DNA of 63,668 bases, filler included, from Neoconidiobolus thromboides FSU 785 (GCA_025603075.1; 6 parts of 6 records of this genome joined end to end with filler, not necessarily neighbours in it), one strand, 5' to 3'. Shown: positions 56,643 to 58,231, numbered from the whole stretch's first letter. The notes: a model not told the origin generated them from the sequence alone. Made by a program: numbers and translations.

Positions 56643-58231
56643 ATGCTAACAGCAAACCGGGATACAAAACAAAAAGAAGTGGATAGTTCTTCTGAGTTAA
56701 ATCTTAAAGATGCCTGTAAAGAACTAAGTTTTATTTTGAATTTGTCATGGCCTATTGTTTTGGACGAAATTTTTGCTACTTCTCCAATGATATATAATAT
56801 GAGAATAGCGGGTTTATTGGGAACTTATGAGTTGGCAGCATCTACTTTAAGTATGACTATATTTCTTATCTTCGCTATGTCCCCATTGGCAGGGATTTTA
56901 ACCGGCTTAGAAACATTACAGTCTCAAGCAATTACTGCTTCAAGACATCCAAAGTGGGTTGGGATCTTAGCTCAAAGAGCTATCCTTATTATCCTTGCTT
57001 TATTTATACCCATCTTTATTTTTTGTTATAATTTTGAATCCATCTTGTTGTTTTTAGGACAAGAAAAAGAGATTTCAAAGTTAGCTGGAAAGTACATGTT
57101 TTATTTTTTCCCTTGTGTCCCACTATTGGCTTTAAATGAGGTGATTAAACGCTTCATGATAATTCAAGGTTAGCATATATTAATTCATTGTAATCATAAG
57201 TTCATTTTTTAATATACAGGCATAACTAAACCTTCATTAATAATATCTATCATTGTCATGCCTATTCATATTTGTTTAGTTTCATTTGCTACTGATACTA
57301 GTGGCTTAAACCTTGGTTTAATTGGAATCCCACTTACTATGATGATTATTGGTTCAATTCGACTGGTGCTATTACTCTTTTCAGTAAAGATAACAGGCGC
57401 TGACTACTACTTTGATGGTTTCAGTAAGGAAGCTTTTAAAGATTGGTTTCCATTCATGAAGATTGCCTTGCCAGGAATAATCATGATTGCCGGTGCTGTT
57501 TGGCCCATTGAATTTATCTCATTTTTAGTTTCTTATTTTGGACCTGCACCATTATCTGCTCAAGCTATTATTGGGGTATCATTTCAAATATGTGCTTTGT
57601 TTTTGGTGGCTTTAGCCTTAGGATCCTCTGTTCGTGTAGGCAACCTTTTAGGATCTAGTTTATTATTCAAAGCTAGACTAAATGCCAGGGTAGTATTACT
57701 ATTGGCTGTAGTACTTGGACTTTTCTTCAATTTTATATTATTTTATTTCCGTGCCAATTTCATTCAGTTCTTTTCAAGAGATGAGCAAGTGTATTTAATT
57801 GCTGATAAAATACTAGCTGTTGTGTCATTTGGATTGGTAATATAATTGTATATATAATTTGGGAATCTTTAATCAATTAATTATTTAGACTTTTTATTCT
57901 ATTGCTACTTTATCTGGAGCAATATTGAGAGGTCAAGGAAAACAAAGTATTGGTGCTTTTTTCAAATTAAGTGGATGTTATCTTGTTTCTATCCCACTTG
58001 GATGGTACCTGGCTATTAAGTTTGAGCTTGGTTTGCTAGGTTTATGGGTAGGCGTAGTTGTATCTTGGATTTACTGTGCTATTGGTGAAGCATATTATGT
58101 TTTAACTACAGATTGGAGAGAAGAGATTAGGCTATGTCATTCTCGTATCCCTGATGCTGAAATCCCAGCACTAAATAATGATTTTGATCCTTTAACCAAT
58201 TATGGTACTATTCCTAGTGATCCTGCTGTTG
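56643..58231 (+). CDS. MATE-family efflux transporter, copy B (3' end off contig); introns 57169-57219 and 57837-57888
   Basis: Inverted near-identical paralog of 41027-42615. Confidence 0.93.

Follow-up and report, generated by a model that had tools for sequence, protein, structure and literature searches.

In paralogues that gene conversion otherwise keeps alike, a local peak of divergence is by accepted practice taken to mark sites under selection, where alleles that lose a paralogue-specific residue through conversion are selected against (Teshima and Innan 2008, in the account given by the review PMC3924837; also PMC3728101). The human pair OPN1LW and OPN1MW, the red and green opsins, is among the described systems closest to the one reported here: conversion acts on both genes, and the spectral-tuning sites stand out as a divergence peak (Teshima and Innan 2008; as outlined in PMC3924837). 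Paralogous differences maintained under conversion are also on record for yeast and Drosophila duplicates (work cited in the same review), and islands of divergence for the GOT1 paralogues of Tigriopus californicus (PMC3728101). The pair of transporter genes described in this article comes from another gene family and another organism than these last cases, and it is a strikingly clean new case of the known pattern. Like the opsins, its members are linked paralogues that appear to be homogenised by frequent conversion, introns included, with a sharp peak of divergence around the amino-acid differences. Unlike the opsins, it has five such peaks in one gene, its repeats are inverted (the opsins stand in tandem), and the contrast is far more extreme, with zero silent divergence set against saturation.

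The proteins belong to a family with well-described members. Human MATE1 (SLC47A1; PDB 9r10, 9r1f and 9r1g), AtDTX14 and CasMATE have a fold of 12 transmembrane (TM) helices built from two MatE Pfam halves, and both are found again in our pair. The C-lobe pocket of hMATE1 and AtDTX14 holds an acid pair with a neighbouring Trp (the acids are E273 and E389 in hMATE1, E265 and D383 in AtDTX14), and the pair binds protons and cations (PMC12559748; PMC5696359). Human MATE1 is the best sequence match of our two copies in the PDB (E = 6e-50); unlike it, both copies are without the C-lobe acid pair and have no TM13. In this they resemble the citrate-exporting HvAACT1 (PDB 9l7l; PMC12358922), which has no C-lobe acid pair and carries acidic residues in TM1, as our copies do with D41-E42; the citrate MATEs are thus a precedent for loss of the pair (PMC12358922). 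The fold match to HvAACT1 is weaker (TM-score 0.75), and the features of that protein include a basic triad and Asp pairs in TM1 and TM5.

The window, that is the whole stretch of DNA analysed, is 63,668 nucleotides long, filler included, and is made up of parts of six records from the genome of Neoconidiobolus thromboides FSU 785 (Entomophthoromycotina; assembly GCA_025603075.1). Positions 41027-58231 are one whole scaffold of 17,205 bp, and the sequence is 72% A+T. The scaffold begins and ends with the arms of an inverted repeat, 41027-42626 and 56632-58231, each 1,600 nt long and each carrying one MATE transporter gene (Table 1). The arms align without a gap and differ by 69 mismatches, of which 63 lie in five patches and the other 6 are isolated, dispersed over 56636-56703 at the 5' end of the copy B arm. 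Both introns are confirmed by a spliced RNA contig from run X3. The coding sequence runs on for 2 codons and a stop past the scaffold end, where the neighbouring scaffolds read AV-stop in one case and VV-stop in the other (a 23rd amino-acid difference), giving a full-length protein of 497 residues. The two proteins annotated as partial are therefore complete but for 2 codons, and P0154, an 86-residue "protein" annotated on both neighbouring scaffolds, is the last exon of these same MATE genes. The genes in the spacer have no apparent functional tie to the MATE pair. A gene-poor stretch of 2 kb upstream of copy B holds, within 55101-55873, three copies of an element of about 95 nt (55103-55197, 55666-55760 and 55764-55858; 71-76% alike), possibly a short repeat of the dispersed or MITE-like kind, together with a 40-nt inverted pair (55101-55140 and 55834-55873). 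No tRNA or Rfam family was found in the piece.

Table 1. Features of the MATE pair and its surroundings, with positions counted from the first letter of the window.
Feature	Position	Strand	Details
MATE copy B	56643-58231	+	P0155, KAI9291198.1, annotated partial; from ORFs/sequence and Pfam MatE
Copy B exons	56643-57168, 57220-57836, 57889-58231	+	Introns 51 and 52 nt
MATE copy A	41027-42615	-	P0001 (the copy A translation), KAI9291193.1, "MATE efflux family protein, partial"
Copy A exons	42090-42615, 41422-42038, 41027-41369	-	Introns 42039-42089, 41370-41421; gap-free reverse-complement alignment to B
Patch 1	56769-56780 (A: 42478-42489)	+	7 mismatches/12 nt; codons 43-46; IFAT (B) vs FLSS (A)
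Patch 2	56860-56900 (A: 42358-42398)	+	15/41 nt; codons 73-86; 4 amino-acid and 8 synonymous codon differences
Patch 3	57113-57203 (A: 42055-42145)	+	27/91 nt; codons 157-173; 3 amino-acid differences
Patch 4	57476-57486 (A: 41772-41782)	+	4/11 nt; codons 261-265; I262/I265 (B) vs M262/V265 (A)
Patch 5	57581-57609 (A: 41649-41677)	+	10/29 nt; codons 296-306; 5 amino-acid differences
Identical block, 212 nt	56901-57112	+	TM2 end to TM4 start
Identical block, 272 nt	57204-57475	+	Intron 1 3' end, TM5-TM6, cytoplasmic loop
Identical block, 94 nt	57487-57580	+	Between patches 4 and 5
Identical terminal block, 622 nt	57610-58231 (A: 41027-41648)	+	Includes all of intron 2; identity stops exactly at 58231
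Spacer between divergent copies	42873-56389	.	Unique, ~13.5-14 kb, ordinary genes
Spacer genes	46400-47166, 47980-48366, 50754-53911		NPL4 family; NUC153-domain protein; large membrane protein with FUSC_2, ALMT, BRE4, ArAE_2_N
Copy B upstream flank	56390-56636	+	~68% identity to copy A flank, several indels (local alignment)
Copy A upstream flank	42620-42872	-	Diverged homologue of 56390-56636
Acid-pair sites, copy B	57444-57461 (listed for codons 268-273); 57895-57897 (codon 384)	+	Residues shared with copy A

The original prediction had described the two copies as base-identical blocks alternating with short, dense patches of difference, and so they are. The patches are 11-91 nt long and 30-58% mismatched. 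Counting all silent sites, those of the intron included, 0 of 371 differ in the blocks and 42 of 71 in the patches (Fisher p = 6e-40). By the method of Nei and Gojobori, none of the 303 synonymous sites in the blocks differs, and the four nonsynonymous differences there all fall in the N-terminal tail; the patches show 28 differences over 35.8 synonymous sites (pS 0.78), with a pN of 0.18. When 69 mismatches were placed at random, 20,000 times over, the longest identical run was at most 323 nt, against the 622 observed in the terminal block, whose identity breaks off 8 nt before the stop codon. The mosaic is highly non-random, and this is confirmed. Every patch holds 2-5 amino-acid differences and, on a recount that agreed exactly with what had been predicted, 18 of the 22 differences within the piece fall in the five patches. 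Where the two copies encode the same residue inside a patch they use a different codon in 20 cases of 31; full saturation with this gene's codon usage expects 18.1 +/- 2.6, so that there is no excess of synonymous change over saturation, the kind of excess that selection for divergence at the nucleotide level might leave. Patch 3 covers the first ~35-42 nt (the 5' two thirds) of intron 1. The N-terminal tail shows another picture: four scattered differences over 56652-56703 (codons 4, 7, 8 and 21), all nonsynonymous and all in a low-confidence cytoplasmic tail, with no synonymous change in 42 codons (p about 0.33, not significant alone).

How old is the duplication? The flanks give one answer. 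About 250 nt upstream of the ATG can still be aligned at ~68%, and about 110 nt past the stop at ~70%, with indels in both; intron 1 carries 14 substitutions in 51 nt and no indel (K2P 0.37, or 0.67 over its divergent part). The duplication is therefore old, and the identity of the blocks, intron 2 included, must be secondary. That the promoters differ had been part of the original prediction, and they do, although they remain recognisably homologous for those 250 nt or so. Segments far too alike for the age of the duplication, at silent and intron sites as well as elsewhere, are what concerted evolution leaves behind, and of the explanations for blocks with zero divergence among patches and flanks that are old, interlocus gene conversion, their standard cause, is by far the strongest; the earlier suggestion that it homogenises the pair is thus supported. 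Silent divergence in the blocks is below 0.008 (95% bound), so that the patches come out as "older" by a factor of at least 45-83. Under uniform conversion the chance that one site escapes for the age of the patches is no greater than 1e-20. Homogeneous conversion is excluded on these numbers, and the islands must therefore be shielded. They have the form that Teshima and Innan describe, sharp peaks of divergence centred on amino-acid differences, five times over.

The history that we would reconstruct begins with an old inverted duplication, covering at a minimum the stretch from ~250 nt before the ATG to ~110 nt beyond the stop, which would have given rise to two divergent MATE genes ~14 kb apart. 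Repeated interlocus gene conversion between the arms would have overwritten the coding region, leaving ~1,200 nt letter-identical, intron 2 included. The flanks, most of intron 1 and the five islands would have remained untouched by it for about as long as the duplication has existed, and so would have reached old to saturated silent divergence. The most likely shield would be selection against converted alleles, each copy needing its own residues in TM1, TM2, TM4, TM7 and TM8, and the islands, being dense in mismatches, would add to it through heteroduplex rejection. A crossover between inverted repeats inverts the spacer and does not delete it, so a pair of this kind can persist for long. 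Taken together, an old inverted duplication with conversion and with islands shielded by selection has, in our estimate, a probability of roughly 0.65. Shown here and counting towards it are the mosaic pattern, the existence of two copies, the age of the flanks and the assignment of helices; we infer that conversion is ongoing, that selection acts as the shield (it is most likely the cause of the protection) and any difference in substrate that there may be.

Both genes had been recognised as MATE genes from the start, correctly. The PF01554 (MatE) profile matches exon 1 with E = 1.7e-18 and exon 2 with E = 4.4e-10, giving two MatE repeats, and the same domain is precomputed for P0001. An AlphaFold (AF2) model of copy B, built from an 87-sequence alignment (pLDDT 94.1, pTM 0.92), predicts 12 long helices (residues 21-59, 61-99, 104-129, 142-174, 179-200, 208-234, 251-279, 284-320, 324-351, 364-397, 400-424 and 430-453) in the V-shape of the MATE fold with its pseudo-symmetric N- and C-lobes, and Foldseek aligns the model to human MATE1 with a TM-score of 0.92 and an rmsd of 1.5-2.0 Å, and to plant eMATEs at 0.89. 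On this high-confidence model patches 1 to 5 lie in TM1, TM2, TM4, TM7 and TM8, in agreement with the helices that had been proposed, and patch 1 adjoins D41-E42. TM1-TM2 and TM7-TM8 are the pairs of helices at the interface of the lobes (PMC12358922; PMC5696359). Relatives are few: among 1.8 billion representatives there is one protein cluster only above 50% identity, and the nearest relative outside the genome, the Logan fragment P0003, is 45% identical and likewise lacks the TM7 Glu.

What kind of MATE these proteins are is a question in its own right. In both copies A268 takes the place of a Glu found in 78 of 85 homologues, Y384 that of an Asp (66 of 83) and V269 that of a Trp (49 of 85). 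They further share I272 in place of Phe or Tyr and A301 in place of Tyr or Phe, and D41-E42 in TM1 at two positions that are Thr/Ser and Phe/Tyr in the family; of the 35 transmembrane positions at which the family is polar, 9 are apolar in these proteins. Neither copy thus has the acid pair and adjacent Trp in the C-lobe by which NorM-like eukaryotic antiporters are known, and with these residues and their neighbours missing we take the proteins to have the MATE fold, yet not to be canonical H+/organic-cation antiporters of the MATE1/DTX type. Loss of the acid pair, together with D41-E42, suggests from the residues present a non-canonical coupling mechanism or substrate class.

The original prediction had gone further and read the patches as two pumps with one scaffold and different pockets. 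The experimentally defined pocket of a eukaryotic MATE lies in the C-lobe and comprises, in hMATE1, E273, W274, Y277, Y299, Y306 and E389 (PMC12559748); in a HMMER alignment these correspond to A268, V269, I272, G294, A301 and Y384 of our proteins. The same alignment, combined with helical periodicity, places only residues 262 and 265 (TM7) and 297 (TM8) on the face of the MATE1 pocket residues. The other four differences in TM8 point elsewhere by periodicity, and the N-lobe, outside the defined eukaryotic pocket, holds 11 of the 18. Most of the 18 are conservative swaps among I, V, L, M and F (I165N, P306A, F300C and Y297F are less so), they occur on all faces of the helices, and those of patch 1 are four consecutive residues. 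We found the 18 positions enriched neither at conserved positions of the family (entropy percentiles are spread, with a mean of ~0.57) nor at polar ones (p = 0.62), and helical conservation moments, which compare the cavity face with the lipid face, were non-significant (p = 0.18-0.83). The patches showed no sign of positive selection, with a pN of 0.18 against saturated pS. At 13 of the 18 positions copy A is the nearer of the two to the family consensus, a bias without statistical significance (p about 0.1). Positions 45, 83 and 173 are Gln-rich or polar in the family, and are therefore probably interior. Two pumps with different pockets would then be plausible at the level of predicted helices, and find no support at the level of residues.

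Some of these results are ones on which a reading without functional selection can draw. Gene conversion would be at work just the same, with dense mismatches blocking strand exchange or triggering heteroduplex rejection and the amino-acid differences carried along as neutral passengers; the islands would have arisen by chance nucleation, or as leftovers of a few discontinuous conversion events of the patchy-repair kind. The conservative nature of the substitutions, their lack of enrichment at conserved or polar positions and a patch pN/pS well below 1 all speak for it, as does the run of patch 3 into the intron, where no protein-level selection acts. Such a mechanical shield, by heteroduplex rejection, accounts well for the maintenance of islands. 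It accounts poorly for the origin of islands of 11-12 nt amid blocks that are continuously homogenised. With an age ratio of at least 45, the new mutations expected per island per conversion interval are far fewer than 1, which counts against neutral nucleation, and on mechanistic grounds one patchy event is unlikely to have taken place between sequences that share, like the patches, 63-70% identity. That all five islands carry several amino-acid changes also goes against it. We regard conversion without functional selection as unlikely, and as the alternative to be taken most seriously.

Close relatives have a bearing here as well, since patch content that differs among them would favour the selection-free reading, and it may indeed vary. 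We placed independently assembled Logan contigs (k = 31) from four public runs on 56300-58231 at a likeness of at least 80%. Near-identical sequence is present in organisms C (run X5) and E (run X10), and each of the two shows patch variants of the A-like as well as the B-like kind, which speaks for shielded islands, though contigs that are unphased, incomplete and bubble-popped carry little weight for or against the stable maintenance of each island. Organism C has both variants of patch 3, and all of its contigs on patches 4 and 5, again unphased and incomplete, are A-like or 10 positions off copy B. From organism E come contigs in which patches 2 and 3 are A-like, and one of 457 nt that covers patches 4 and 5 and is B-like there. 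Two different contigs of organism C lie over patch 5 (57539-57707), each 10 positions off copy B; position 56703 is A-like in all of its contigs there; and the region upstream of copy B, over 56300-56560, comes in two alleles, with 3 and 15 differences, each at ~24x. Organism C suggests a heterozygous or mixed sample, with a patch content unlike that of FSU 785. A search with exon 2 for gene fragments of related strains found none, and no proteins of relatives or orthologous pair from another species were retrieved.

The contigs of runs X1 and X3 speak to whether the mosaic is real. Block identity could be overstated by collapse of the repeat or by consensus, the patches could be mis-phased between the copies, or both, and the assembly gives some grounds for asking: the 622-nt block was assembled once and reused on four scaffold ends, being found also at the end of scaffold MU626261.1 (313.6 kb) and at the start of MU626445.1 (37.9 kb), in each case followed by divergence. 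The repeat broke the assembly and the same 622 nt were pasted on all four ends, which is why the ends are symmetrical and why their identity is in part a matter of construction. Logan contigs, too, have small bubbles popped, so that one or two single SNPs inside the blocks would not show. The RNA contig from X3 (56666-58097) follows copy B at patches 1, 2, 4 and 5 but resembles copy A at patch 3, which may be an arbitrary resolution of a bubble or may mean that patch 3 is mis-phased in the assembly, on which the phase of the patches in each copy rests. Depth, however, points the other way. In the DNA run X1 (organism A) each variant of patch 3 has a contig of its own, 151 nt long, at the equal, single-copy depths of 438.8 and 435.9, the unique flanks of copies B and A stand at 427 and 448, and contigs through the identical blocks at 735-815, which fits double coverage once popped patch bubbles are allowed for; these depths match an exact two-fold coverage of the blocks within noise. 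At 58231 the graph forks into two continuations, at depths of 438 and 449. Patch variants and unique flanks at single-copy depth, with blocks at double, mean two loci in a genome sequenced at haploid depth, and no third copy. Against the blocks the RNA contig shows 0 differences over ~830 nt of exons 2-3, and mis-phasing, had it occurred, would leave the mosaic intact. An artefact of assembly is accordingly very improbable. The possibility of alleles rather than paralogues is ruled out by the single-copy flanks and variants, the double-depth blocks and the non-allelic upstream flanks. RNA depth in X3 is 237 for the contig at the 5' flank of copy A and 63 for that of copy B.

A very recent duplication, with the patches imported into one copy by short tracts from a third, distant MATE paralogue, is scarcely credible, for all that short, dense and indel-free patches resemble templated mosaic conversion: the reads offer no candidate donor (the eight X1 contigs at 80% likeness or more are all accounted for by copies A and B, with no third variant among them), nor do two very large protein collections, which hold no other protein above 50% identity, and the flanks of both copies are old, with 3'UTR and promoter divergence of the same order as that of the patches.

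An old inverted duplication with shielded islands has consequences for how this genome is to be read. The real locus joins three scaffolds, and the pair explains why these three break there in the public assembly; the 14-kb spacer could be present in both of its inversion isomers. For the family the larger prize would lie in the islands themselves. It is possible, and we put it forward tentatively, that they chart, as it were, the residues that determine specificity in a non-canonical MATE, divergent selection holding two cleft linings (TM1, TM2, TM4, TM7 and TM8) apart while conversion shares the scaffold between them. If that is true, the pair would be a ready-made chimera experiment pointing to the residues that set substrate choice, and it would offer 18 candidate residues that tune an uncharacterised type of MATE without the acid pair.
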